DNA of 64,000 nt from Paragordius varius (Eukaryota; Animalia; Nematomorpha), in contig OZ176058.1 of NCBI GenBank assembly GCA_964247055.1, forward strand, positions 4,898,001 through 4,962,000, given 5' to 3'. Both the position numbers and the translations under genes were made by a program. Shown piece by piece: positions 17,801-41,300 of the stretch (the stretch's first letter is position 1; each line of letters starts with the position of its first letter). Under the pieces are notes generated by a model. The model worked only from the letters and a program-made list of their open reading frames with translations, searched no databases and was not told where the DNA came from.

Positions 17801-20776
17801 AACATTTTACCAATAAAATCTCAAATCGTGTAGTTTTTTAAAAAAAGTTTTTTCAAACATAACAACTCATACAAAATATGTTACATTTCTGACAAAAAAA
17901 CAATAAATATCCATTTTTTTTATATTTGTTCAAATTTTTGATTTTTTAAACATATTTACCATATCCTTAATGTTTAATTGTGTAGTTTTTTAAAAAATAA
18001 TTTTTTAAATATAAAGAAACCCATACAATATATATATCAATTCTGACAAAAAATTTAATATCATTTTTTTAGATTTTTCCAAATTTTTTGATTTTAAAAC
18101 AAATTTTTTGATTTTAGATTTTTACCTGTAATTTTCAATTTACCTGAGTAATTTGTTCACTCTTCTTTTGAATGTCGAAATTATTATTATTGGTGACATT
18201 TACCTGATTATTATTATTGTTGTAAGTGGAATCATCTAATGTTGGCATACTAACTTTTTTAATATGCAGACCATCTAATTCAATAATTTTTTGACCAATT
18301 TTTTCAATTCCATAGTTTACCTGAAATAGAAAATATTTAAATTTTATTTAAATAGATATATTAATATGATATAAAAAGAAAAAAATTAAAAATTCTAAAA
18401 AGACAATTCAAAGTTTAATTAGCTTTGAGATCGGTTTCGAAAAAAAACACGTCTTTTTAAGGGCAATTTTTTGTGTAAATAGTTTATCCATGTAAAAAAT
18501 GTTAAAACTATGAATATAATATACCATTTATATTTCAAATTTATCTCCTTAAACGATTCAAATTCACCCTTAAACAATTCAAATTCACCCTTGAACAATT
18601 CAAATTCACCCTTAAACAATTTAAATATTCACCCTTGAACAATTCAAATTTACCCTTGAACAATTCAAATTTATGAACAATTTAAATTCACCCTTAAACA
18701 GTTCAAATTCACCCTTAAAAAATTCAAATTCACCCTTGAACAATTCAAATTCACCCTAAAAAATTACGTGTGTTTTAGGATTAAAAATTAGCTATATTTT
18801 TTTATATTTTAAAAAAACAAATTTCGTTTCAAATTAAAATACTGAAAAATTAATAAACTATGCTATAAAAATATATTTAATTTTAAGATGAGTTATATTA
18901 GACCGAAATTTAATAATTTATTTTTAGGGTAAATTTGAAGTATAAGGTATATCAACATACTAAGGGTAAATCTCTATAATTTATTTTACGAGTTAACATA
19001 ATAAATGATTTACATACAAAATAAAAGAAATTAGGCCTTTTCATTGCAAAAAACATATAACATTTACTAAAATAGTAAAGACTAAATGCGATTAACTTAA
19101 TAATAATTAAATTTATTAATTTTCGAGTGATATAATTCACTCTTTTTCAAATCAAATAAAAATTTTATAAAATGGCCAATGCTTATTATATAGGTGCGGT
19201 GAAAGGTAATTGATGAAAAAAACCAAAATAAATTTATCATGAACACAGACAGACCAATATATCAATAAAATGGACGACTTATTGTTAAAACTGATGAAAA
19301 GACCCAACAAATAGAATAACAACACTTATTAAAAAGGCCATAAAAAATTCCTCTTTTACCCCGCCCCCACCCCCCCGGGTCTATGGACTACCCAAGGTAT
19401 ACATAAAAATCTGTGATACCCTTACGACCTATAGTAAGCAACATCAATTCTCCAACAGATAAACTTTCCAAACAACTTTGCCTAAAACAGAATCATACGT
19501 TAAAAATAGTGTTGATTTAATCACTTTTCCCAAGAATACCCAGATTCCAAGTATCAAAACTTTTAAATGATTTAACAGGGCTTACATCCGGATATCACCG
19601 AAAACTAACCTGCATCTGTCTTTATAATACCTTTTTTATGTCTTTCTTTAACAACCAATTTTACCTACAAAACAACGGCACTCCTATGGGCTCAAACATT
19701 TCTCCAATCCTCGCAGATACATTTACATGGAAAGTTTTGAAGAAAAACTTGTATATAAGAAGTCCGAATTCCTCCCTTACGTGGATTATGTCTTTGTCAC
19801 ATGTGGCCACACACACACACACATGGAGAAGAAAGGTTATGCAATTTTTACATTTTTACGATCATATAAATAGTTTAGTTTATATAAAAACATTATATTT
19901 ACAATGGAATATAATAGCTATTTAAAAAGTTTCCTAGATGATACCATGCTGACAAAATGTAACCACAAAAATTGGAATTTTTTTTTGTAATAAATTTAAT
20001 ATTCGTACAGTATACAAACCACCAATGTCTAAATTAATCAATGTAAAAAGATCCAATCTCACGTGACCGATTACCAGGAATATATCAAGCCACGTGTTCC
20101 TGTGAAATTTATATTGGAGAAACTGGAAAAGCATTAGCACAAGAAGACTGTAAAATACAGTAAAAATGGAAATTATACGGACAAAAAATTATAAAGACAA
20201 ATATTTTTTTTCAAAAAAAGGACAACCCCATACTTTTTAAAACCACCTTAATTTTTGATATACCCTTAAACAATTTAAATCACCCTTAAACAATTCTAAT
20301 TCACCCTTAAACAATTCAAATTCACCCTAAAATAAATAAATTATGTGTTTTTTAAGTAAAAAATTACGTATATTTTTATATATTTTTAAAAAATTGAAAT
20401 TACGTTAAAATTTATATAATACTGAAAAAATAATAAATTATGCCATAAGAATATATTTTTTATAAGTGATGAGTTAATTAGCTGTCCAAAAACACATAAT
20501 TTATTTTTAGGGTAAATTTGATTCAAGAGTGAATTTGAATTGTTCAAGAGTGAATTTGAATTGTTCAAGGGTAAATTTGAATTGTTCAAGGGTGAAAATG
20601 AATTGTTCAAGAGTGAATCGAATTGAGGGTGAATTCGAATTATCGCAGGGTGATATAAAATAGTTCAAGGGTGAAAATGAATTGTTCGAAGGGTTGAGGT
20701 ATAAATCTTATATATATAAATAAATAATAAATCTTTCAAAAAAACACAAGTTAATTCTTTTTAAGGCAAAAAAATA

Positions 20777-20817
<41 letters not shown>

Positions 20818-23686
20818 GTTTTAATTTTTAACCCCCCAAAATTTTTTGTAAAATTGTAATATAAACTGCAAACAAGCAAACCTCATTAACAATTTCAAGC
20901 CATCTAGGTTCCTTTTGATTTTCTATTAAAGAATTTCCATTTTGTTGATTGCCAGGATTTTTCTTTACCAGCCCATTTTGATGAGATTCATAAGTAGTTG
21001 AAAAATTCTTAATATTAAAATTGAAATTATTTTTTATATTTTAAGATACTATAATAGAGATGTAAATTGTGTTAATATGTTCAAATATATTTAAATTGAA
21101 TAAAAAATTGAAATTTTACTGATTAAACACTTAAAAATAAAATGAAATAGTTTTTTAAAGATACTATATAGTTTTTTTAAATAGAGATGTAAATTGTGTT
21201 AATATGTTCAAATATATTTATATTATATTAAATTGAAATTATATGGATAAAACACGTGAAAATAAAATGAAATAGTTTTGTTATATAAAAAAAATAACCA
21301 TACTTAGGAATTTTTTACAAAATATAGTTGTAAATTGAAACATATATTTAAATTGAATATATTAAAATCGAAATTATAAGGACAAAACGTAATAATAAAA
21401 AGACAAATTATTTTTTATATAAAAAAATAACCATACATACTTAATAAATTTTTTAAAAATAGATATGTAAATTGTGTTAATATATTTAAACATATATATA
21501 TACATTACAGTAAAAAAATATAACGACAAATTATTTTTTTTATTAAAAGAAACCACCATACTTTTCAAAGCTTAATTTTTTCTCTATAAGCTATTTAATT
21601 ACGAATGTTAGATATAGAAATGATTGTGTTAGTTATATATATCTCTATTTCACACTTTGCCATATATAACAATAAGTAATATTGATATAAATCTATATTT
21701 AAAAAGTATGGTTGTCTTTTAGAAAAAAAATATTTGTCTTTATATTTTTACGTTTTATCCGTATAATTTTGACTTTTACTTTAAATTTTGTTCAAATAAA
21801 CAATGAATGTAAGTTTTGTTTGAAAAAAGGGTAGGGGGCTGGTTATCTTTAAGTTAAAAGAAAATATTTGTCTTCATATATTAAAAATTGAAATTATACG
21901 GACAAAATGTATAAATATAAAAACAAATATTTTTTTCAAAAACAACCCCATACTTTTCAAACCTTAATTTTCCCTTTATAAGCTATTTCAGACTTTTCAA
22001 TATAAAATAATAAGTTATAATGAAAAATTAAGATCTAAAAAATATGGTTATCTTTAAGTTAAAAGAAAATATTTGTCATAATATTTTTGCGTTTTGTCCG
22101 TATTAATTAAATTTTTGTAAAATTTAACTCAAATAAAGTATGTATGTAAGTTATAATCAAAAAAAATCTAGATGTAAAAAATATTGTTGTCTTTTAGAAA
22201 AAAATATTTAACCTTATATTTTTACGTTTTGTCTGTATAATTTTGACTTTTAATGTAAAATTTGGCTTAAATAATGTATATATGTAAGTTTTGTTTCAAA
22301 AAACCTCAAAATTTAATGGTTAACTTAAAATTAGTTTAAAGAAAATATTTGTCTTTATATTTTTCCGTTTTGTCCGTATACATTAAATTTTTACTGTAAA
22401 ATTTTGCTCAAATAAACTATGTATGTAAGTTTTTTTAAAAAACTCAAGATTTAAAAAATATAATTATCTTTAATTAAAAGAAATTATTTGTCTTTATATT
22501 TTTATGTTTTGTCCGTATAAATTAAATTTTTGTAAAATTTTTGGCTTAAATAAACTATGTATGTAAGTTTTGTTTCAAAAAACCTCAAAATTTAATGGTT
22601 AACTTAAAGTAAGTTAAAAGAAAATATGATTGTCTTTATATTTTACGTTTTGTCCGTATAAATTAAATTTTGTAAAATTTTTGGCTTAAATAAACTATGT
22701 ATGTAAGTTTTGTTTCAAAAAACCTCAAGATTTAAAAAATATGGTTAATTTTAAGTAAGTTTAAAGAAAATATTTGTCTTTATATTTTCAATCTTTTTAT
22801 TTTTTTATTTTAAATTTTTACTGTAAGTTTTTCATTTCTTTTTAGGCGATTTTTGGTTGTTTGATTGAAAGGTAAAAGGCCCATTTCTATATCTTGGTTT
22901 GAAATTAAAGCACATTTTTCATCCACATCATACTAAAATGAATAAAAAATAAAAGTTAAAAAAATTATAAAATAAAGCTTTAAAATTTTATAGTAAAAAA
23001 TGATTTTTTTTAATTAGTATAAAATGATACTATATATTTTTTCGTTATAAAAATATTCTAAAATTAATTAAAATAATGTAAAAAAAATGTTTTAACCGTA
23101 TTAAACTAATCTTTTTTGTTATAAAAAAATTAAAATTCAAAAGAAAATAAAAAACTAAAATTTAACTAATACAGAAGACGAATATTTAAATCAAGAGTTT
23201 ATAAAAGTTAAGGTTTAATGTAAAAACTTCTTAAAATGTAATCGTCTGAAATAATAATTTAAAAATTTACTTATCGTTTGTGCGTTATTTTTAACATTTT
23301 AGGTTTTGTCTTTATAAATAAATTTACTGAATATTTCAATGAGAAAATTAAAAAGGATGGGCATAGTTTTGATTATAAAAAAAATAATATATTTTTTCTA
23401 AATTATTTAATGAGAGTAATTTTATAGAGACAAATTTTACAAATAACAAATCATAACTTTTTTATGCTTATTGAGTATTCATCCTTTAGAAACTTAACAA
23501 TTTAAATAGTGTAATTATTTACAATATAATAATTAATATAAAAGTTGCTTAAAAAAATAGTTTTATTAAATATATATTTACTCAAATAGGTAAGCTTACT
23601 GCGTCGTAAGATGATGGAAAAAACTTGGATTGGTGGGAATTGTTGCGCAACAAAATGAAAATATCAAATAACCCGCGTGTAGCCAT
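11870..23686 (-). CDS. STX16: Syntaxin-16 (Qa-SNARE, Tlg2 family), left-arm copy, 9 exons, ~434 aa
   Basis: Exons 23686-23600, 22932-22822, 21007-20882, 18320-18144, 17284-17104, 15202-15093, 14182-14012, 12992-12840 and 12058-11870 total 1305 nt, are in frame and use GT-AG. Motifs: MATRGLFDIFILLRNN N-peptide, PRWLEIVNE, MPTLDD, FRRSQSTYLK, SNARE segment EINSLVQSIQDLN..FQDIGTLVHDQGTTLDRIDYSIE, and a C-terminal TM anchor. Confidence 0.92.
14298..14869. mobile_element. TIR element family D with expanded subterminal 21-bp minisatellite
   Basis: TA|CCATTTGCA ... TGTAAATGG|TA with tandem AACAATTCAAATTCACCCTTG-like units. Mirrored at 40424-40927. Confidence 0.7.
15880..17103 (-). repeat. STX16 exon-5 3'-end plus donor echo array, left arm (~6 units)
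   Basis: The motif 'ctttaagataagtggattgact...gtcacacaattgtttagc' recurs near 16005, 16200, 16415, 16570, 16775 and 16935. Confidence 0.88.
18520..18950. mobile_element. Family D element with 21-bp minisatellite; empty-site counterpart of the LINE insertion
   Basis: Tandem TCAAATTCACCCTTRAACAAT units. The reverse complement matches the flanks of the LINE at ~31270 and ~34960-35220. Confidence 0.65.
19180..20150 (+). pseudogene. Degenerate Penelope-like retroelement reverse transcriptase fragment, left arm only
   Basis: Frameshifted motifs YINKMDDLL, YGLPKV, LRPIVSNINSPTDKLSK, SYVKNSVDL and FNNQFYLQNNGTPMGSNISPILAD, typical of PLE RTs. Confidence 0.75.
20260..20700. repeat. Family D element with 21-bp minisatellites in inverted orientation at both ends
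   Basis: AATTCACCCTTAAAC units at 20260-20330 and GGGTGAATTTGAATTG units at 20510-20690. Mirrored at ~29980-30410. Confidence 0.65.
21780..22821 (-). repeat. Tandem ~140-180 bp units built from the MITE-A terminus and STX16 exon-2 donor (left arm)
   Basis: Repeated 'atatttttacgttttgtccgtataaattaaatttttgtaaaattttggcttaaataaactatgtatgtaagtt'. Confidence 0.8.
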
Positions 23687-24669: not shown

Positions 24670-24980
24670 GAAATAAACCGCTTTTTCTGTTTCTATCAAT
24701 GTTAGATGTGATTTAAATAAAAAATTAGCGTTAATTTTACCCTTAAAATTAAACGAAGACGATATTTTGCAAAAATTTTATAAAATAAAAATGACGTCGA
24801 AGTAGTTTGACATGGAATTTTTTTATTTATTGATATTTTGGCATATTTATATAATTTATATTAGGATAGAAGCATAAATTTTAATTGGGATCTTTTCCTT
24901 TAGTAGTTTTTTAAAAATCCTAACTAAAGTTTAGTCAGGGTATTTAGATATCCCAATCGAATCGAAGTGTTGAACAAAAC
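24670..24980 (+). repeat. Family C dispersed repeat in the palindrome spacer
   Basis: Colinear with the reverse complement of 59320-59620 and with the 340-640 region. Confidence 0.6.
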
Positions 24981-25103
24981 AACGCCGGGATTCCGCAATA
25001 GAATTTTTATATGCTAAATTTTGACATCAAATAAATATTTTTTTAATAAATGCATAATTTCAGAAATTCAATTTTAAGCAAAATTTTGTTTTTCCTATTT
25101 TTA

Positions 25104-25341
25104 GGCATGATGGAAACGGCCTTTCAGATATTGTAATATTTTTGCATATAATAATGTTGAACTTCTCTATCGATTTGGAATTTTAATTTAAAGGTTCGTT
25201 ACATTATGGATTTTTATATACAAAAACACAAATATTAATTAATATTCTGAGGTTATTGAAACGCAAAACATCATTGAATTATGTAGAATAAGTGTTTTTT
25301 GTAATAATCTAAAGGCCTTTTTATGCCGTTTCCATCATGCT
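25104..25341. mobile_element. Small TIR element with 3-bp TTA target duplication (PIF/Harbinger-like MITE)
   Basis: TTA|GGCATGATGGAAACGGC ... GCCGTTTCCATCATGCT|TTA. Confidence 0.65.
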
Positions 25342-26238
25342 TTATTATAATATAAAATATGCTCTAAAAAATTTGAAAAATTATATTTTTGTTACTATGC
25401 ATTTATTTAAATTATTGTATGATGGCATCTAGCTTATGGCTAAATTTTTATCGGGCCATCCGGGCATTCTTGTGTTTATTTTTGAAAACTAGCTAGAAAA
25501 ATAAATTAATGCTTTCGAGGCCCACATTTTATATTTGAAATTTTTAAAAATTTTGTTTTTTTTTTAATGTATGATATTGGAATAAAGCATTCTTTCATAA
25601 AAAAATTTTATTACGAAATCTGAAGTTACTTTTTAGTGTGTTATTTTTCTTATATAACTGTAAAGCCCCAAACTAAATGCCATGTGATTCCTAATATATT
25701 TTTCTATAAAAATAATTTTATTATGTGATTTTTTGTATACACTGTATATATAATCAATTTCAACTCATTATCAATAATTAACTTTTGTTTTTAATTTTTA
25801 GTTATTGTTGACTTTGATGTCCGCAAGTTCCAGGGTTTTAAATGTTATCCCTTTTGGATATAAAACTACTTCAAAATTGATTTGCAATAAGTTTGAACTG
25901 CACAACAACCAAATAACAATATAATATTCTATTTTTTATTTATTTATTAAGGTCTAATTTAACAAATTTATATTAGAAATATACTGGTACAGAACACTCA
26001 ATGATAATATTAAATATCAAATAAAAAGTAATAAATTTTTGTATAATAGATTAATAAAATTTAAAAATATTTTTACATTAAAATATCTCAATTTTAAAAT
26101 GCACAGATGTAAAATATATTTCAGTAAAATTAATTTACATGCACGTTTACACATGCCATTAAACACTTTATCGATTGCGTAGGCTTTGAAATAAGGGTAA
26201 AAATTTTATTAACTCTTAGAAATATGATCTAAAAGAAA

Positions 26239-28799
26239 ATGGCTACACGCGGTTTATTTGATATTTTTATTTTGTTGCGCAACAATTCCCTCCAATCCAA
26301 GTTTTTTCCATCATCTTACGACGCAGTAAGTTTACTTATTTGAGTAAATATTTATTTAAAAACTATTCTTTCAGGCAAAATCTTATCTTATTTATTATAT
26401 TGTTAATAATTACACCGTTTAAATTGTTAATATTAATTTTCTTAAAAGGATGAATACTCAATAAGCATAAAAAAGTTATGATTTGTAAAAATTGTGTCTA
26501 TAATTTGTATTCTATAATTTAAAAAAATATTATTTTTTTATTTTAAAATAAAATTTTAATCGATACTATGCCCACCCTCTTAAATTTGCCCTTTGAAATA
26601 TTCAGTAAATTTTGATTTATCAAGACAAAACCTAAAAAGTTAAAAATAACGCAACACCAAACGATACGTCAAATTTTAAAAATTATTTTTTCAGACAATT
26701 ACATTTTACGAAGTTTTTATATTAAAGCTTAAATTATATAAACTCATTGAATAATCCTCTTCTGTATAATTTTAGTTTTTTATTTTCTTTTGAATTTTAA
26801 TTTTTTTATAACAACTAAAAAGATTAGTTTAATACGGTTAAAACATTTTATTTAAATTATTTTAATTAATTTCAGAATTTTTAAACCAAAAAAATATATA
26901 ATATTATTTTATTCTACTGATTAAAAAAAATCATTTTTTACTATAATATTTTAAAGCTTTATTTTATGAATTTTTTATGTATTTATTTATTTGACATATA
27001 GTATGATGTAGATGAAAAATGTGCTTTAATTTCAAACCAAGATATAGAAATGGGCCTTTTACCTTTCAATCAAACAACCAAAAATCGCGTAAAAAGAAAT
27101 GAAAAGCTTACAGTAAAAATTAAAATTTAAACACGTTTAAAAATATAAGGACAAATATTTTCTTTTAACTTACTTAAAGTTTAATCATTAAATTTTGAGG
27201 TTTTTTGAAACAAAACTTAATTCATACTTTATTTAAGCAAAATTTTACAGTAAAAGTCAAAATTATACAGACAAAACGTAAAAATATAAGGTCAAATATT
27301 TTTTTCTAAAAGACAACAATATTTTTTACATCTAGATTTTTTTTGATTATAACTTACATTCATAGTTTATTTGAGCAAAATTTTACAGTAAAAGTTAAAA
27401 TTTAAACACGATTAAAAATATAAAGACAAATCATTTTTTTTAACATACTTAAAGACAACAAACCATACTTTTTAAATCTTGATTTTTTTTGATTAAAACT
27501 TACATTCATAGTTTATTTGAGCATAATTTTACAGTAAAAGTAAAAATTATACGGACAAAACGGAAAAATATAAAGACAAATCGTTTTCTTTTAACTTACT
27601 TAAAGTTAACCATATTTTTTAAATCTTGAGGTTTTTTGAAACAAAACTTACATTCATAGTTTATTTGAGCAAAATTTTACAGAAAAAATTGAAATTTATT
27701 ATGGACAAAAGGTAAAAATATAAGGACAAATATTTTCTTTTAACTTAAAGACAATAAACCATACCTTTTAACTCTTGATTTTTTTTGATTAAAACTTACA
27801 TTCATAGTTTATTTAAGCCAAATTATACAGTAAAAGTCAAAATTATACGGAAGGACAAAAGGTAAAAATATAAAGACAAATATTTTTTAATAACTTATTT
27901 TAAGTTAATCATATTTTGTAAATCTTGTGTTTTTAAAAACTTACATACATAGTTTATTTGAGCAAAATTTTACAGTAAAAGTCAAAATTATACGGACAAA
28001 ACGGAAAAATATAAAGACAAATATTTTCTACTAACTTAAAGATAACCATACTTTTTTAAATCTTGATTTTTTTTGATTAGAACTTATTATATGATATTGA
28101 AAATTTTGAAATACATATACATATTACTAACACAATCAATTTTATATCTAACATTCGTAATTAAATAGCTTATAGAGGAAAATTAAGGTTTAAAAAGTAT
28201 ATTTTTCTTTTCAAAAGTATGGCTGTCTTTATATTTTTACGTTTTGTCCGTATAATTTCAATTTTTACTGTATAAAGACTAATTTTTTCTTTTAACTTAC
28301 TTTAAATTAACCACCTTTTCAAACACTTACATTCATTGTGTTAAGGAAAAATTTAATATACCATTTGCACTTCAAGTTGGTCCTTTGACATTTTGTTTTG
28401 TTTTAAATTTTTATCATTAATTCGTATATCATCTATTGTATTTTATTGTTTTTAACCTAATTTCTATTTAACATACATTTTAACTAATATCAACTTTTAA
28501 ATATTGAAAAACCGTATATATTTATTAATTTCTTAAGATTATTTTGGATATTTATGAGATTTTATCTTGTAATTAAAAATATATAAGTTTTTGGGGTTAT
28601 TATTTACATTTTTTCATTGAAATCATTCTAAAATCATTAACTTTGCAAAATAATTAGTTGGAAACAAAAAAGTGGTTTTTAAATAAAAATTATTTTTAAA
28701 TAAATAAATATATAATAAATAAAGAAAATTATGGTTAAATCAAAATTTAAAAATTTTAAAGACCAACTTGAAGTGTTCAAGGACCTTCTTGAAGTGCAA

Positions 28800-28843
<44 letters not shown>

Positions 28844-29521
28844 TTTACAATTCAATTTCACCCTTGAACAATTCAAATTCCCTCTCAAATAAAATATATG
28901 TTTTTTAAGATTAAAAAGTATTTATATTTATATATTTTTTAAAAATAAAAATTTTGTTTTGAATTAAATACTAAAAAAAAATGATAAACTATACCATAAA
29001 CATATATTTCATATTAATAATGAATTATATTAGTTTGAAAACACATAATTTATTTTTAGGGTGAATTTGAATTGTTTAAGGGTGAATATGAATTGATCAA
29101 GGGTGAATTTGAACTGTAAATGGTATATATATGTATATATAGTAAAAATTGAAATGCTATGGACAAAACGTGAAAATATAAAAACAAAATTTTTTTCTAG
29201 AACTATACTAAAAGAATTGTTTTAATGCAAAGTGTGAAATAGGTGTATATAATAGTAACACAATTTACAATTGTGTAACAAAATAGCTTATATGTTAAAA
29301 ATTAAGGTTTTGAAAAGTATGGTAAAATATTTTTATCTTTATATTTTCACGTTTTGTCCCTATAATTTTTTTTACTGTAATATATATTATATACATATGT
29401 TTAAATATTTTGACACAATTTACATATTTTTGAAAAATTTTTTATTTACTATAGTTATCTTTTGCATATAAAAACTAAATTTTTTATTTTGTACGTGTTT
29501 TATCCGTATAATTTTATTTTT

Positions 29522-29585
<64 letters not shown>

Positions 29586-32500
29586 TCAATGTTTTAACAC
29601 AATTTACATATCTATTTTTAAAAAATTAATTAAGTATGGTTATCTTTAAAATATAAAAAAACTATTTCATTTAATTTTTACGTGTTTTATCAGTAAAATT
29701 TCAATTTTAATATCAAGAATTTTTCAACTACTTATGAATCTCATCAAAAGGGGCTGGTAAAGCAAAATCATGGCAATCAACAAAATGGAAATTCAATAAT
29801 AGAAAATCAACAGAATAAAGAACCTAGATGGCTTGAAATTGTTAATGAGGTTTGTTTGTTGATATTATAATAATTTTACAGGTAAAAATTTGTAAATAAA
29901 GTAAAAAGATATTTATATTTTTGGTTATAACGACAAAATTAACTTGATTTTTTAAATGATTTATTATTTGTTTTATAAATCTATAACATTTATACCTCGA
30001 ATTTATTCTTGAACAATTTAAGTTCGCCCTTGAATTATTTTAATTCACCCCCTAATTCAAATTCACCCTTGAACAATTATTATTCACCCTTGAACAATTC
30101 AAATTCACCCTTTAACAATGTAAATTTACCTTTGAACTGTTAATATTCACCCTTTAACAATTCAAATCATACCCTAAAATTATTTATATTCTCCCTTTAA
30201 CAATTTAAATCTCACCCTAAAATTAATCAATTTTTAAATGAATATTAAAAATTATGTATAATTTTTATATTTTTTTTATTATTAGTTTGAAATACTAAAA
30301 TTTCGTTTAAAATTAGTAATATCATAATACTGAAAAAAATAATAAACTGATGGCTATAAAGAAATCCTAAAAACATATAGCTTATTTTTAGGAGGGGGAA
30401 TTTACAGTAAAAATTGAAGTTATACTATGGAAAAAAACGTGTAAAAATAAAAAGACAAATATTTTTTTCTAAAAAACAACCCCATACTTTTTAAAACTTA
30501 ATTAATTAAATGAAACACATTCTTTAAACCTGTAAAGTAAAATATAAAGAGATAAATATAAGGTAACACAATTAATTATATATATTTTACAATCGTAATT
30601 GAATGATTTTTATATAGAACTTAAGATTTGAAAAGTTTTTTTTGAAAAAAAATCTTGTCTTTATGTTTTTACGCTTTGTCCGTATAATTTCAATTATTAG
30701 GGTGAATTGTTTCAACAAAATATAAGATCTAAAAAATCTTTTGTCAAAATGTTTTAACATATTAACTTACAGTAAAAATTGAAATTATACGGACAAAATG
30801 TAAAAATATAAAGACATTTTTTTAAGACAACCATACTTTTTTAAACCTTAATTTATCCTATAAAAAAACATTTTAATTACAATCGTAAAATACATTTTTG
30901 ATTGTGTTACCAATTTACATTTCTATATTATATTTTGGAGTTTATAACAATAAGTTATATAAAAATCAAGAATAAAAAAGTATGGTTGTCTTTTAAGTTT
31001 TTTGTCTGTATATTTTCACGTTTTGTCCATAGTATAATTTCAATTTTTACTGTATCTTTTCTGGGGGCTGGAAATCCTAAATAAGGTTTGTTTGCCTTTT
31101 ATATTAGTTTTTCAGTAAAAATTTTAAAAAAAGTAAACTAAAAAGAGTTTAATAATCTTTTTTGGTAATAACGACAAAATTAATCAAAATTGCTACTAGT
31201 TTTTAATTTATTTATTAAAAGGCATGATTATGTTATAAAGCCATATATTTCGGATTACAGGTATTAATGATAATTCACCCTATACAATTTAAATTCTCCC
31301 TAACAAATAATTATGGGATGCAAAGACCGACTCCCACCTCCTCGCGGGGCATCCCGGGTAACGCTAACGGGAGCGGCACTGTTTGTAAAGAACAGTCAAT
31401 GAACATCAATCCACAAGGAGAAAAACTAGTGTGTGGGGCGTGGCGGAATTGAGATTGGCTGTCTCATTTTCTTACAAAATACCACAATGCCTGTATTCAC
31501 ACACATGGTTTTAAAGCGGGTTTATCTGGGCGCTATAACCAGCAGCCAGATGATAATAACGATAATATAAGTACTTAAAACGAAAGATGGAGTGGGAGCT
31601 TCCAAAGCCCAGAAAGGCACCTCCCTCGGCCGTAGACTTAAATCTACAAACGGATTGAGAGATTCGAAGTCTTTTCAGACACTCTCTAGCCTGGTACAGC
31701 GAATAAGGTACTCTCTCCTCCGAGTTAAGAGGTTGGCTATAAGGGCATATAGTCTATAAAAATCAAGCCTCATTACTTTTACCATGTTCAACAGCGAAAT
31801 AATAATGAATAAATACTACTTATAAAAGCGTCTTTGAAACTTTATATTATATATTTTTATACTGCATAATAATAATAATTATATTTATAATACATCTACG
31901 GAAAAGTGAAATGTTACCTGAGAAAAAATCATTTAATATTAAAAATAATAACTTTAAATTTGGCACATGGAATGTCGGAACTCTTGTTGGAAAAGCTTGG
32001 ATGATAATAAATGCGATTAAAGAACAAAAGCTTGACATATGTTGTTTACAAGAAACTCGTTTTAAAAACGGAGGTAATTATCAACATGAGGGTTTTACAC
32101 TGTATTATGAAGGAGGAAAATCAGGGAAATCAGGGGTAGCAATAGCCATAAACGATCAGATAAAAGATAATATAATTGACATTACACGTCACAGCGACAG
32201 AATTATTCAAATGCGAGTGGCTCTCAATAATACCACCCTTAACATACTATCCATCTATACCCCTCAACAGGGTCAAAATGAAACTACCAAACAGGAATTT
32301 TGGAATCAGCTTTATCAGATCGCACAAAATGTTCCCACAACTGACATACTTCTGATCGGCGGAGATTTTAATGGACACATTGGAATGCACGCTGATGGTT
32401 ATGAAGGTATACACGGTGGAGTAGGTATTGGCTCTCGCAACAAAGAGGGCGAAACCCTCTTGGAATTCTGCAGAGCCGCAAACTTATTGATTTGCAACAC

Positions 32501-35050
32501 ACACTTCTGTAAAAAACCTAGCCAAATCCACACATATAAAAGCGGAAATCACACATCGCAAATAGATTTTGTGTTGCTGAACCAACAACTTAGAAAAATT
32601 ATAACCAACTTTAAAACTTATGAATATGATACACAACATAAACTAATAGTTGCTTTTTTAATAATAAATAAGAACCGACCTAGCCCTAAAAAATTGCCAC
32701 AACTTAACGTTGCAAAACTTAATGATCCTAAAACAAAGCATCAATACATCAACCAAATTACACCTGAACTAAAACATTCCCCTAACAACGTTCATGACGG
32801 CTGGGAGCATCTCAAAAACACCCTTCTCTCAAACGTTTCCAAAATCTGCGGAAGAAAACGTACCAAAACAAAATCTCAATGGTGGTGGCAAAGCGATATT
32901 AAACCCTTATTGAATGAGAAAAGAGATGCCTTTAAGAAATGGAAAGCTTCTAAACATGATGATGACAAACATTTTTACATAATGGTTAAAAAAAGAGTAA
33001 AGAAAATAATAGCTGACAAAATGAATGAAAGATGTTTGGAAATGGCCAAAAAACTTGAGGGAGAAATTAAAAACTTAAAAGTTTTTAAAACACTAAAAAA
33101 TATTAATAATAATAAAAAAGATATTCGGGTAGTGAAGGCCATAAAAGATAAAAATAACAACACAGTTACTGACACTCTTAGCATTCAAAATGTATGGACA
33201 CAATACATGCAAAATACACTGAATTTCCAGCATTCAAATGTCGAGATCCCAAACTTACCTCCAGTTATTGGGCCACCCCCAATTATTACTCCAGAAGATG
33301 TGAGCTTAGCCATGCAAAAATGTAAAATCAATAAGGCATCTGGTCCAACGGAAATTAAAACTGAAATGTACAAAAATATTCCTGAAGCAATTACCTATTT
33401 CACAGAGCTATTTAATCTGATTATAATGGAGGAAAAAATCCCGAACGACTGGAACCAAAGTGTCATAATTCCAATATATAAAAACAAAGGCGACATGCTC
33501 AACTGCGCCTCCTACAGACCATTAAAATTACTTGAACACGCAACCAAATTATTCGAAATAATTATAGAAAAGAAAATACGTCAGCTTTGCTCGATTGACG
33601 AAAACCAATTCGGTTTCCAACAGGGGATCAGCACCTCTGACGCCATATTCATTCTTAGAAGGCTACAAGAGAACTACAGATGCAAAAACAAAACCCTATA
33701 TCACATCTTTATTGATTTAAGCCGTGCATTCGACTGCATCCCGCGGTCCATGATCACATTTGCGTTACGAAAAAAAGAAATCCCGGAATGGATAATAAGA
33801 ATAATAAACTTACTATATGAGAACACCACTAGTTGCGTGAGAACTCCCGTGGGTGATACCAACCAATTTCCAGTAACTGTCGGACTACACCAGGGCTCCA
33901 TCCTCAGTCCATTACTATTTATCATCATTATGGATGTAATAACTGATAATATAAAAACAGGTTTACCTTTTGAGATGATGTACGCTGACGACATAATACT
34001 AACAGCCACCAGCGAAACAGACATTATCAATAAATATAACCTCTGGAAATCTACTTTAGAAAAATTTGGCCTCAAAATTAACACAGATAAAACAAAGGCT
34101 TTAATAACAGGCTCACCGGTACCTGTAATAAAATTCCCTTGCTCCATTTGTCACTCTGAAGTGAAACTTAATTCCATCAAATGCACTAAATGCCAGCTGT
34201 GGGTCCATAAAAAGTGCTCACAAATTAAAGGAAGTTTATTGGGAATTGAAAATTTTATATGTAAAGCTTGTGCAACACCAGATATAAACCCAAATAATCC
34301 CACACAAACCACCTACCTTCCAACTACAAACATCGAAATAGTAAACAAGTACAATTACCTGGGTGACACAATAGCAGCTGATATGAATATTAAAAACGCC
34401 ATAACAACACGGACACATCAGGCTTGGGCCAAATTTCATCAACTCAAGTATATAATGAAACACAAACACATTTCAAACCCAAACAAGGGCAAAATCTACA
34501 CGATTGCCATTCGCCCTGCCCTCACCTATGCTAGCGAATGTTGGCCCTTAAACCAAACTAATGAAAATAAATTATGTGACATAGAAAGAAAAATCCTCAA
34601 CTCATGCCTCACCAATCAGTATCACAATGATAAAACAAATAATAATAAAAGCATACATAATCTGTTTCATATCGCACCTATGTCTTCTTTTCTCAGAGCA
34701 AATCGTCTCAGATACTGGGGTCACATTGAACGCTCAAATAGTTGGATTAACAAAATTAGATCCTTTCATCCGAACGGCAATTTAAAACGAGGCAGACCAT
34801 ACCATGATTGGGAAAAAACACTCAGCAATGACTTACACTTAACTCAATTGAACAAAGACGATTGTCTCGATCGCAAGCTATTTCGCTCAAGAATTTGGAA
34901 GCTGGCACATGCTGGACAAACAACGACTTGATGATGATGATAACAAATAATTATGTGTTTTCGGGCAGCTAATATAACTCATCATTAATAAGAATTATAT
35001 TATGTGGCTTTTTACAGTAATATCTTTATTTCAAACGAAGTTTCATTTTT

Positions 35051-35372: not shown

Positions 35373-38300
35373 TTTTCTCTATTAACTCAGGTAAACTATG
35401 GAATTGAAAAAATTGGTCAAAAAATTATTGAATTAGATGCGTTACATGTTAAGAAAGTTTGTATGCCTACTTTGGATGATACCACTTATAATACCAATAA
35501 TAATAATCAGGTAAATGTCACCAATAATCCTAATCTTGACATTCAAAAGAAAAGTGAACAAATAACTCAGGTAAATTTTTGAAAATTACAGGTAAAAATC
35601 TTTTAAGAATTTTTTAAAATCAAAAAATATGAAAAATTACAAAAAAAGTTGAAAAAAATTGATAAATATTTAGATTTTTTTTTATATTTCTTACATATAT
35701 TGTATTGGTTATCTTTATATCTAAAAAATTTTAAAAAATTTCATAGTTAAAAATTAAAATGATAAATCTGTTCTTAAGGACAAATATTTTTTTGATTTTT
35801 TTTCATTGTTTTATTTTCCACTAAAATAAATGTCACCAATAATAATTTCGACATTGAAGAAGAGTAAACAAATAATTCAGGTAAATACAAGATTACAGGT
35901 AAAAATGTTTTAAAGAGTGATCAAAGGTGAATTATTGTTTAGGGTAAATTTAAACTGTAAATGGTATATATATATGTATAGATGTTACAACATTGTCAAT
36001 CACTAGTCAAATGCATAAATAATCAAAAACAACTTCAACTCAACAATAACACGAATACAGAAGAAAAAAACAGCCCTAGGGAAATTCAACTTAAACGTAA
36101 TATTACAACTTTTCTAGCTCGACAATTGTGTGACCTTACCTTGTCTTTTCGTCGAAGTCAATCCACTTACCTTAAAGGTTTTGCTTTGAAATTTTCGCGT
36201 TAAAATTTTTTTTAAACATTAAAAAAATAATTTTTTGATTTTAACTAAAATAGCTTTCAAGAAACATTTAAACGCAATAAAACAACCTTATTAGCTAAGT
36301 TGTGTGATTTACCCTTGAGCTTTCGACAAAGTTAATCCACTCAAATTTTCTCGTTTAACTTATCTTAAAGGTTTTGCTTTAAAGTTTTCTGGAAATTGAA
36401 ATTTTGAAAATGTTTTAAAGTGTTAAAATAGAGTTTTAAAACTAAGTCTGTTGAAAAAACCCTTTAAGAAACGCAACTTAAACATTATATGACTTAATTT
36501 ATCTTTTCGACGAAGTCAATCCACTTATCTTAAAGGTTTTGCTTTTGGAGTTTTTAAATTTTCAAAGTTTGAGTTTTACCTTGAGTTTTTGGCGAAGTCA
36601 ATCCACTTATCTTAAAAGTTTTGCCTTCAAATTTTGAAATTTTTTGAGTTTTAAAACAAATTCTGTTGAAAAACGCTTAAAAATTGCAACTTAAACGCAA
36701 TATAACAACTTTCCTAGCTAAACAATTGTGTGACCTAATCTTGTCTTTTCGCCGAAGTCAATCCACTTACCTTAAAGGTTTTGCTTTATAATTTTTTATT
36801 TTTTCAAAGTTTGAGTTTTTAAACAATTCTGTTAAAAATCGCTTCAAGAAATGCAACTTAAACGTAATATAACAACTTTTTTAGCTAAACAATTGTGTGA
36901 CTTAACCTTGTCTTTTCGACGTAGTCAATCCACTTATCTTAAAGGTTTTGCTTTGAAATTTTAAATGTTTTTGAGTTTTAAAACAAAATCTGTTGAAAAA
37001 ACGCTTTAAGAAATACAACTCAAACGCAATATAACAACGTTTCTAGCTAAACAATTGTGTGACTTAACCTTGTCTTTTCGTCGAAGTCAATCCACTTACC
37101 TTAAAGGTTTTGCTTTTAAGTTTTCGCGTTTAAATTTTTTTGAGTTTTGAAACTGTTGAAAAAACGCTTTAAGAATTTCAACTTAAACGCAATATAACAA
37201 CTTTCCTAGCTAAACAATTGTGTGACTTAACCTTGTCTTTTCGACGAAGTCAATCCACTTACCTTAAAGGTTTTTTGAAATTTTGAATTTTCAAAGTTTG
37301 AAAGCGTTTCAAAGTGAATAATTAACTAATTTTTGGGTTTTAAAACAAATTCTTAATAAAAACGCTTAAGAAATGCCATTTAAACGCAAAAAAAACAATT
37401 TTTTTGTTAAACAATTGTGTGACCAAATCTTGTCTTTTCGTCGAATCCACTTATCTTAAAGGTTTTGCTTTGAATTTTTAATTTTTTAATGCGAAAAAGA
37501 TTCATGTTTGTATTAAAATTTGTATAAAAAAGTGAAACTTAAACGCAATATTACAACGTTTCTAGCTCGACAATTGTGTGACTTAACCTTGTCCTTTCGC
37601 CGTAGTCAATCCACTTATCTTAAAGGTTTTGCTTTAAAGTTTTCTGGAAATTGATTTTTTGAAAATGTTTTAAAGTGTTAAAATAGAGTTTTAAAACTAA
37701 GTCTGTTGAAAAAACGCGCCAAGAAATGCAACTTAAACGCAATATAACATTCCTAACTAAACAATTTTGTGAATTAACCTTGACTTTTCATCTAAGTCAA
37801 TCCATTACCTTAAAGGTTTTGCTTTCAAGTTTTCTGGTTTTAAATTGAAATTTTGAAGTATTAAAATAATTGATAAAACAAAATTCTTTATAAAAACGCT
37901 TGAAGAAAACCAACTTAAACGTAATATAACTTTTTAAGTTAAACAATTTCGTCGAAGTTAATCCACTTATCTTAAAGGTTTTGCTATTAAGTTTCTGGAA
38001 AAATTTAAATTTAGAAACATAAAAAAATAATTTTTTTAAGTTTTAAAACAAATCTGTTAACAAACGCTTCAAGAAATGCGATTTAACATTATATGACTTG
38101 ATTTTGTCTTTTCGCCGAAGTTAATCCATTCACCTTAAGGTTTTGCTTTAAAGTTATGAAATGTTTTAAAGTGAATAAAAAAAATAATTTTTTGTCTTTA
38201 AAACAAATTTTGCCTAAAAACCTTTTAAGAAATGCAACTTAAACGTAATATAACAACTTTCCTAGCTAAACAATTGTGTGACCTAACCTTGTCTTTTCGA

Positions 38301-41300
38301 CGAAGTCAATCCACTTATCAATGCCTTGAAATTTTAAATTTTTTGAGTTTTAAAAATTCTGTTGAAAAACGCTTCAAGATATGCATCTTAAACGTAATAA
38401 AACAAATTTTTTTAGTTAAAAATTGTGTGATCTAATTTTGAGTTTTCGACAAAGTCAATCCACTTACCTTAAATTTTCTGGAAATCGAAATTTTGAATTT
38501 CTTTGAGTTTACTAATTTTTTGAGTTTTAAAACAAAATCTGTTGAAAAACGCTTTAAAATTGCAACTCAAACGTAACATTACAACTTTCCTAGCTCGACA
38601 ATTGTGTGATTTAACCTTGTCTTTTCGCCAAGTCAATCCACTTATCTTAAATGTTTTAAATTGAAATTTTGAATTTTTTGAGAAATTCTTCATAAAAACG
38701 CTTCAAGAAATGCAACTTAAACGTAATATATCAAATTTTGCAGTTAAACAATTGTGTGATTTAATCTTGAGTTTTCGACGAAGTCAATCATCTTATCTTA
38801 AAGTTTTGCCTAGTTTTCTGAAAATTAAAATGTTGATATATTTCAAAGTGTTTAAAATAGAGTTTTAAAACATCTGTTGAAAAACGCTTCAAAAAATGCA
38901 ACTTAACGCAAAATGCAACTTTTTCAGCCAAAAAATTATGTAATTTACCCTTGAGTTTTCGCCGAATTCAATCCACTTACCTTAGAAATTCTGCTTTGAA
39001 ATTTTGAATTTTCAAAGATTGAAAGCGTTTCAAAGTGAATAATTAACTAATTTTTGGGTTTTAAAACAAATTCTTAATAAAAACGCTTGAAGAAATGCCA
39101 CTTAAACGTAATAAAACAAATTTCCTAGCGAAACAATTATGTGACTTAATTCTGTCTTTTCTCCGAGTAAATCCACTTATAAAGGTTTTGCTTTAAAGTT
39201 TTTGAATGTTACAAAGTTTGAGTTATAAAACAAATTCTGTTGAAAAATGCTTCAAGAAATGCTATTTAAACGTAAAAAAACATTTTTTTAGTCAAACAAT
39301 TGTGTGATATATCTTTGAGTTTTCGGCAGAGTCAATCCACTTATCTTAAAGGTTATTTTTGAAGTTTGAAATGTTTCAGAGCGAATAAAATAACTATTTT
39401 TTTTAAAACAAAATCTGTTGAAAAATGCTTTAAGAAAAAAAAATATATGTCCTCTTTTCATGTGTCATTTTAAGTTTTAAAAATCAAAAATTATGGTTTC
39501 TTATGGGCAAAAAATATTTTATTATATAATTTGCATTTGGTTTCTAAAATTTTAACATAAAATATATTTAATATTAAATTATCATCAAAAAAATGTATGG
39601 CGTATTAGAAATATTTGTTAATCATTATATTCAATAATTGTTAAATTTTTTCTTTATCTTTTTAATTTTTAACTAAAATTTTTTACTTAAAAAAACTTCA
39701 ATATAAAGTGTAAAAAATTACATTTGTAAAAGAATTTATATTAATTTTTACATTTTTTTCTTTATAAAATATAATAATATACATTGCTAGAAAGTTATTA
39801 ATTATTGCCAAATAGTAAATACAAAAAAGGGGGCTTATAGTTAATTTTTTCACTTACTAATAGTCAATAATAGTGCCCCCTTTGTTGTATTTACAATTTG
39901 GTAATATTTAATAACTTTCTAACAATATATATACTTACTTACTCATGTATTTATTAAATATATCAAACTTGAAATGTTCAAAGGACCAAATTTGAAGTGT
40001 TTAAGGACACTCTTTAAGTACAAATGGTATAATTTGAATAAAAAAATAAATCTTAAAAACATTTGTAGTTTAATGTTAAAATAATTTTAATTGTAATTTA
40101 TTTTATAACTTAGAAATTGAAAGATTTAAAACACTGTATGAGCAATACAATACGACCCCCACCATGGATTATAAAACATCCACAGCCAAAGCATATGTTA
40201 ATGAAAATATCACAGTAAAAATTGTATTAATTAAAAAGATAAAGACAATAAATAATTTTTCTTCAAAAGACAACCAACCATACTTTTACAAACTTTAAAA
40301 TCTTTCACATATAATCTACATGAAATTTTATTTAAAAATGATATATAATTGAGTGGATTAACACAATTTACATAACTAATCTTTATTTAACAATAAGTAA
40401 TATTTTGAATATATTAAGGTATACCATTTACAATTTCCACGCTCAAACAATCCAAATTCACCCTCGAACAATATATTATGTGTTTTCTTTCAAGCTAACA
40501 TAACTCATCATTTATATGATATATATTTTTTGGACATAGTTTCATATTAATTTTAAACAGAATTTCATGTTTTGAAAAATATTAAATAATATAGGTAATT
40601 TTTAATCTTAAACCAAAACACATACTTTGTTTTAAGGTGAATTCGAAATGATAACAAGGAATTCGAATTGTTCGAGGCTTTTGTATTGCTAACAAGGGTG
40701 ATTTTGAATTGTTCAAGGGTGATTTTGAATTTTTCACAAGGGTGAATTTGATTTGTTCGTTCAAGGGTGAATTTAAATAGTTCAAGACTGAATTTGATTG
40801 TTCAAGGGTGATTTTGAATTGTTTGAGGGTGATATTTAATAGTTCAAATGTGAATTCGAACAAGGGTGAATTCGAATAGTTCAAATGAATTTGAATTGTT
40901 CACAGGGTGAATTTGATTTGTAAATGGTATATTAATTAAAAAGTATGGAGTTGGTTGTCTTTTAGAAATAAAAATATTCTTTATATTTTTACCTATTTTA
41001 TACTTTTAATTTTTACTGAATATTAATAAAAAAACTCTTTTCAGGAACACGATGAAACTACCAATACAAAAATTTTGTGGGAAAATAAATTGACTTTGCA
41101 TTCTGAACAACACCCCACCGATAATGTTATAATGTCTGAAATTGATATAATAAACCATCAACAATCAAATGATAATTCCTTAAACTCCAATTTTGAACGT
41201 ATTCAAAAAGTTAGTTTATATTATATAAATATTGAATACTTTTTTTAATTTATAATTGCGAGTATCAAATTAAAACATTTTATTTTGTAAATTTTTTAGT

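Follow-up and report, generated by a model that had tools for sequence, protein, structure and literature searches.

Syntaxin-16 intron 2 of Paragordius varius and its possible origin from a Tc1/mariner-type MITE

Introduction

Was the second intron of a syntaxin-16 gene made by a miniature inverted-repeat transposable element (MITE), or did the element enter an intron that was already there? The question is raised by a stretch of 64,000 nucleotides from Paragordius varius (contig OZ176058.1; G000:C9:4898001-4962000), referred to here as the window, in which both borders of syntaxin-16 intron 2 coincide with the ends of one MITE. With a GC content of about 22%, the window is very rich in AT. 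Coordinates are those of the window unless another locus is named, genome-wide counts refer to the assembly of 110.6 Mb, and splice junctions are marked by a slash.

The introners of Micromonas and Aureococcus and the wider class to which they belong have been described by Gozashti et al. 2022 (PMC9860276) and in a review (PMC11282704). In a large survey, introner-type gains were found in only two animal groups (PMC9860276).

Results

Borders of intron 2 and the ends of the MITE

The MITE family is of the Tc1/mariner type (Stowaway-like). Its members have a TA target-site duplication (TSD), ends CAGT...ACTG, a length of about 290 bp and long inverted arms, and are without coding capacity. The window contains 12 full copies of 244-313 bp, from which a consensus of 291 nt was built; TA is present on both sides in 9 of the 12, on the left in 11 and on the right in 10. 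The 17-mer terminus CAGTAAAAATTGAAATT, allowing up to 3 mismatches, was found 87 times in the window versus 6.5 expected, which amounts to about one terminus per 1.5 kb per strand. Genome-wide, the exact 18-mer end occurs 1350 times, as compared to 0 in the control.

Syntaxin-16 exons were deduced from open frames and ortholog similarity and were compared exon by exon, without a joined protein. In the plus-strand copy, named G, exon 2 (27002-27112; open frame and 3' splice site) reads YDVDEK...NEKLT if the MITE GT is the donor. It is followed by a predicted phase 0 intron of 2605 nt (27113-29717, +; open frames and paralog conservation) and by exon 3 (29718-29852, +; open frame and paralog conservation), which reads NFSTT...KEPRWLEIVNE. 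Exon 2 ends with ...GAAAAGCTTACA (...CTTACA) at 27112, and the intron starts with GTAAAAATT at 27113. This 5' border is TA plus CAGTAAAAATT, i.e., position 1 of the MITE consensus preceded by TA. The TA in the left TSD slot (27109-27110, +) stands directly before the MITE terminus, and bases 3-4 (27113-27114) of the left arm L (27111-27168, +; consensus 1-64) are the proposed GT donor. The first 60 nt of the intron match consensus positions 1-64 with 80% identity (E 2e-11). Thus, the claim of the preliminary description that exon 2 ends at TA plus a MITE terminus, and that the MITE provides the GT, was borne out in the sequence at 27112/27113.

At the other border, the intron ends with ...AATTTCAATTTTAATATCAAG at 29717 and exon 3 starts with AATTTTTCA (AATTTT) at 29718. 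The last 100 nt of the intron match consensus positions 193-284 of 291, and the remaining 7 positions are in register and substituted. The right arm R (29613-29713, +; consensus 193-291) is directly followed by the right TSD slot and the host AG of the 3' splice site (29714-29717, +); the slot holds CA in copy G, TA in copy A and AA in copy B. The register is thus exact at both intron ends, which speaks for a MITE origin.

Arms L and R have a rare variant in common. Read inward, both carry AACACGT in place of AAAACGT of the family (27130-27136 in L; ACGTGTT at 29680-29686 in R). Within the window, the variant is confined to arm L, arm R and the duplicates of R; about 90 other arms are without it. 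Genome-wide, the variant word was counted 5 times versus 1838 times for the consensus word, i.e., in about 0.3% of arms. Since this variant is rare and common to L and R, both arms belong to one and the same element and form its two ends; an ordinary intron has no space in the empty site between them.

Intron 2 in the syntaxin-16 copies

Syntaxin-16 is present in the genome in four copies, arranged head to head as two pairs with about 100 kb between them (G000:C9 4804307-4836564 and 4909873-4941935, the latter being window positions 11873-43935). Copies G (+) and A (-) lie in the window, and copies B (-) and C (+) upstream. The last exons of the four are 98-100% identical at the protein level, the introns only 76-86%. 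Copy C is without exons 1-3, which were lost by a deletion matching window positions 24975-30599. Exons 2 and 3 were found in exactly three genomic copies (G, A and B), all of which are split at the same place; no unsplit copy of exon 2+3 was found in a genome search. Exon 2 shows 97% conservation at the protein level in two paralogs, with in-frame indels only. The three genomic copies of exon 3 are 91% identical with open frames, and conservation falls at both borders. Among G, A and B, exons are much better conserved than their flanks and differ in length only by multiples of three. Since intron 2 is common to all three copies with exons 2 and 3, it is older than the gene duplications.

In copy A, the same intron lies at 21008-22821 (-), between exon 2' (22822-22932) and exon 3' (20879-21007). 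It starts as ACA/GTAAAAATT and ends as AATATTAAG/, the ending that had been described for the minus-strand, left-arm copy and that was seen here as well. The 5' junction is ACA/GTAAAAATT also in G, and TCA/GTAAAAATT in B; the 3' ends are AATATCAAG/ in G and AATATAAAG/ in B. Acceptor position -3 is A in all three copies and position -4 is T in copy A, which fits a TA duplication. An alternative in-frame donor GT, CGC/GTAAAAAG, is present 24 nt upstream of the MITE GT in copy G alone (27089-27090, +); A and B have CT there, and other AGs near the junction of G are missing from both. Thus, ACA/GT...AAG/AAT is the only junction common to all copies, and in two of the three paralogs (A and B) the MITE GT is the only usable nearby donor. 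The right end, which reads AATAT for TACTG in the last five nucleotides of arm R, was altered already in the common ancestor of G, A and B.

Intron position in other animals

Five syntaxin-16 proteins were mapped exactly onto their genes, namely those of Gordionus (hairworm), S. purpuratus (urchin), Polistes (wasp), Porites (coral) and Oscarella (sponge). Sponge, coral and hairworm have six introns in common: after the N-peptide, PPx/W (phase 2), after W..EE, IKQK/ (phase 1), ITQ/ and YLK/. The urchin gene has all of them but the one after W..EE, and the wasp gene kept only the first and the YLK-type introns. An intron between the N-peptide intron and PPx/W was found in none of the five, which is the outcome of the comparison of intron positions in orthologs that the preliminary description had called for. 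Intron 2 of copy G is located 43 codons upstream of PRW, within a linker of about 42 residues that is missing from the other species. The absence of an intron there in five animals and the location in an extra linker together indicate that the position of intron 2 is lineage-specific.

The present gene keeps the N-peptide and after-W..EE introns and is without PPx/W and IKQK/ (window 29839-29852 and 35412-35470). These two introns, common to sponge, coral, urchin and hairworm, are lost in this gene. A phmmer search with the last exon gave weak matches only, the best full-length match being Gordionus with 42%; neither phmmer nor word searches returned a protein of a closer relative. By exon-wise identity, the gene is not clearly nearer to Gordionus than to the other animals.

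Proposed origin of intron 2

A single MITE of about 290 bp would have inserted at the TA of ...AAR CTT AAG AAT... in what was then one continuous exon, comprising today's exons 2 and 3. First, the CA/GTAAAA of the element itself would have become the 5' splice site. Second, the host AG directly after the duplicated TA would have become the 3' splice site. Third, the piece removed by splicing would have been the element plus one TA, so that the frame was kept and only AAG (K) was changed to ACA (T). As had been noted before, removal of the element and one TA leaves a contiguous frame, K-L-K-N-F at the empty site versus K-L-T-N-F after splicing; the empty site indeed reads through in frame, and in copy G it is also plausible as a 24-nt GT-AG intron. 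The insertion would have preceded the gene duplication into G, A and B. Later, the interior may have grown to 1.2-2.6 kb by tandem duplication of half-elements and by nested insertions. A further change would be the replacement of the five terminal bases of the right arm, which may have unpaired the donor from the hairpin.

On the evidence of the sequence, a MITE may well have made syntaxin-16 intron 2, a reading that is about evenly poised between right and wrong. The preliminary description had read the intron as apparently created by a MITE. Its basis holds in that both intron borders belong to one MITE and the position is absent from five metazoans; the proposal is weakened in that insertion into a tiny pre-existing intron also fits. 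The order of events and the use of the MITE donor in RNA, as given above, are the conjectural parts of the reading.

Further support comes from an IMPAD1-like gene (L061, about 7290-6540, -), in which an exon ends as ...GGAAT TA CA/GTAAAAATT at the same MITE terminus. The donor at this terminus is the only one in phase for the acceptor TTTTTAG/T. A second MITE is nested inside this intron. The outer right end can be aligned in three different ways, which makes its position ambiguous, and the 3' side is unclear.

Points against a MITE origin

Several observations weigh against the origin from a MITE. First, the right end reads AATAT+CA versus the expected TACTG+TA, with 4-5 of 7 positions changed. 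The right end had been described as having the same length as an inverted terminus plus TA plus AG; length and register stand, since there are no indels, and the match needs 4-5 substitutions. A MITE subfamily ending in ...TTTTAATAT was considered as the source of this right end and was rejected, since the genome search gave 11 matches versus 4 in the control. Second, the coding linker that flanks the intron is not alignable residue by residue to other species.

Third, little sign of the same process was found elsewhere in the genome. Exact right ends followed by TA+AG account for 43 of at least 1350 (3.2%), versus 3.7% expected from the share of TAAG among the TA sites of the window. None of about 30 inspected TAAG-flanked copies had convincing coding flanks across the predicted junction. 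Thus, with TAAG flanks at chance level and no coding flanks, nothing points to an introner burst at present. The suggestion that introns are being generated here by a MITE, if taken as a general process, was not supported by these numbers, and the genome-wide count of terminal inverted repeats (TIRs) followed by TAAG, which had been put forward as a check, gave no excess over chance.

Fourth, the genome contains introns of 23 nt, and in copy G the part of intron 2 from 27089 to 29717 comes to exactly 24 nt of GT...AG in phase 0 once the element and one TA are subtracted. Hence a pre-existing tiny intron is possible. Fifth, since introns can be tiny, any transposon that enters one lands close to the donor and the acceptor alike, so that a MITE end at a possible donor has no diagnostic value on its own. 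Intron 6 is a clear case of this kind, with a MITE inside an older short intron of 40 nt. In copy G (40215-41044, +), a MITE left terminus is located at a possible donor, CA/GT (40213-40216), downstream of an older donor GTTAAT (40197). The right end of the MITE is at 41018 and is followed by the TSD slot and 24 non-MITE bases up to the AG (26 in all). Paralog B has TA on both sides of the element, and all three of A, B and C have it on the left. The empty site comprises 40 nt, GT...AG, and is not readable through as an exon. The old donor GTTAAT is kept in four of four copies, the MITE GT follows 18-21 nt downstream and in frame, and either donor leaves an open frame.

Alternative readings

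It is quite possible, without being probable, that the MITE landed in a pre-existing 24-nt intron (GTAAAAAG...GCTTAAG, phase 0, after ...AAT CGC). The element would then have inserted at the second TA, two bases ahead of the AG. Copy G may still use the donor at 27089. In A and B it would have been mutated to CT, and the in-frame MITE GT 24 nt downstream would have taken over, extending exon 2 by 8 codons. The MITE would thus have enlarged the intron and later supplied or doubled its donor, and would not have created the intron.

That introns of this size exist in the genome is secure. An inositol-monophosphatase-like (IMPase-like) gene has three consecutive GT-AG introns of 23 nt (L059 1925-1947, 2088-2110 and about 2210-2232), and its frame and its conserved ...GEES...WIVDPIDGTTNF motif are restored only when all three are removed. 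The 24-nt remainder in copy G, being of exactly this length and in phase, fits the tiny-intron class of the genome. It also fits the signals of the ultra-short introns in myxobolids and Dicyema, i.e., GTa...AG with a few A residues before the AG (PMC13644364); given these signals, richness in A no longer counts as an argument against the 24-mer being an intron. An unsupervised search for tiny introns in open frames gave too much noise to yield a profile of length or composition. Intron 6 gives a precedent, since there the same family is seated in an older 40-nt intron, with an intact TA duplication on either side, and all four copies have the old donor.

The comparison with intron 6 also has another side, because the upstream GT of intron 2 is present in one of three copies versus four of four for the old donor of intron 6. 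Moreover, the 24-mer is stop-free, has a length divisible by three and shows no indel in any of the three copies. Its divergence in copy A is lower than that of the 24 nt that follow the MITE GT, which is not so in copy B (3 versus 2 differences). None of the five animals, hairworm included, has an intron at this site. Tiny introns are, by our estimate, a far smaller insertion target than exons, and this course of events requires more independent steps.

Everything other than these two readings, taken together, is unlikely. Within this remainder, it is quite improbable that the gene model is wrong or the match fortuitous. The two arms could be unrelated insertions in an ordinary older intron, or the exon borders could lie elsewhere than given here (through another donor or acceptor, additional small exons or gene copies in decay), and the match of MITE ends and splice sites would then be apparent only. 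In favour of this, the junction was deduced solely from open frames and from conservation among paralogs, half-elements and nested elements are mixed in a complex way in the interior, which varies between copies, and one of four gene copies is truncated. Against it, at one terminus per 1.5 kb and strand both ends would be in exact register by chance in far fewer than one intron per genome, L and R have their rare variant in common, and exons 2 and 3 are open in all copies with indels of multiples of three only.

A wider claim is that the MITE family is an animal Tc1/mariner-type introner, which would have made several lineage-specific introns and would be the chief force enlarging introns of 20-30 nt to kilobases. 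This is doubtful. Many near-identical family introns in unrelated genes were not found, and the IMPAD1-like gene is the one further candidate. If the claim held, exonic insertions at TA/AG would be spliced in frame, with the CAGT end as donor and the TA duplication plus host AG as acceptor, and it would cover both syntaxin-16 intron 2 and the IMPAD1-like intron.

Interior of intron 2 and further features

Within intron 2 of copy G, a tandem array of MITE left halves extends over 27138-28086 (+), with a period of about 150, 6.6 copies and a higher-order period of 441. A full-length MITE with a perfect right terminus (27971-28273, +) is 79% identical to the consensus, and an older one (29138-29379, +) 67-68%. 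A duplicated MITE right half (29425-29528, +) carries the AACACGT-type variant, as in arm R. The interior also contains other elements, and its make-up differs between gene copies. The intron (27138-28086 and, on the minus strand, 21000-21420) has a run of left halves near its 5' end and a run of right halves near its 3' end. Each half-element unit has TA+CAGT, preceded by a short stretch like the end of exon 2. These runs may have arisen by nested insertion into the centre of an element or by tandem duplication of the exon-intron junction.

The remaining exons of copy G, all on the plus strand, are exon 1 (26239-26325; open frame and ortholog similarity), exon 4 (about 35400-35567), exon 5 (35982 to about 36190), exon 6 (40114-40214), exon 7 (41045 to about 41208), a SNARE exon ending at about 42850 and the last exon (43750-43935). 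In intron 3, an intact non-LTR retrotransposon open reading frame of 1006 aa is present in sense orientation (31911-34931, +), with endonuclease/exonuclease/phosphatase, reverse transcriptase and PHD-like finger domains.

Elsewhere in the window (20123-20159, +), a MITE terminus breaks an open frame with the GIY-YIG-like motif GIYQATCSCEIYIGETGK; the frame is probably that of a nuclease from a Penelope-like element. A second MITE family was seen at L004 3500-3910, with ends TACCATTTACAG... and internal GGGTGAATT repeats. There, the element lies directly 3' of a GC-richer coding exon ending in ...ACATGCAG, and the donor is away from the element terminus. A locus 1.46 Mb upstream was considered as a case of the same kind as intron 2 and was rejected, since it involves another MITE family and a donor off the terminus.

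Discussion

Cut-and-paste elements in exons can be spliced from transcripts via cryptic sites at or near their inverted ends, as for Tc1 in mutant pre-mRNAs of C. elegans and for Ds and dSpm in maize. Those cases are recent mutant alleles with imprecise removal. In contrast, the element in syntaxin-16 intron 2 is old, fixed and present in three paralogs, and its removal is predicted to be in frame.

The locus resembles introners in several respects. The element is a DNA transposon, short and non-autonomous, with TIRs and a TSD; it provides one splice site, and duplicated or flanking target sequence the other. The ends of the intron are those of the element, and the intron position is lineage-specific. 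It differs in that one or a few candidate events are seen here, as compared to hundreds of near-identical introns; in that the TSD is TA (Tc1/mariner type) and the AG is a host base pair after the TSD; and in that most of the more than 1000 copies are not introns, TAAG is not in excess and splicing is predicted only. Among animals, the tunicate Fritillaria borealis offers a parallel, since according to the account in the review (Henriet et al. 2019, as cited in PMC11282704) MITEs with TIRs and TSDs are found there at species-specific intron positions. By the same account, these introns are numerous in Fritillaria and for the most part non-canonical (AG-AC, AG-AT), whereas the intron described here is canonical (GT-AG) and a single locus. 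The 24-nt remainder of copy G resembles the ultra-short introns of myxobolids and Dicyema (PMC13644364) by its length, its GTA start and its A-rich tail before the AG. Unlike these, it is a stop-free multiple of three, intact in one of three copies and without a hairworm counterpart.

Datable and mechanistically transparent intron gains are rare in animals. If a MITE made intron 2, a simple rule would follow, by which a TA-duplicating MITE turns into a frame-neutral intron with GT from the element and the host AG after the duplication. Such a gain would then have occurred in a genome that also has some of the shortest animal introns. If the MITE instead entered a tiny intron, the locus would illustrate how transposons in introns of 20-30 nt mimic transposon-made introns and can shift donors. 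Annotation of this genome, or counts of intron gain in it, must therefore separate introns made by MITEs from MITEs in tiny introns.

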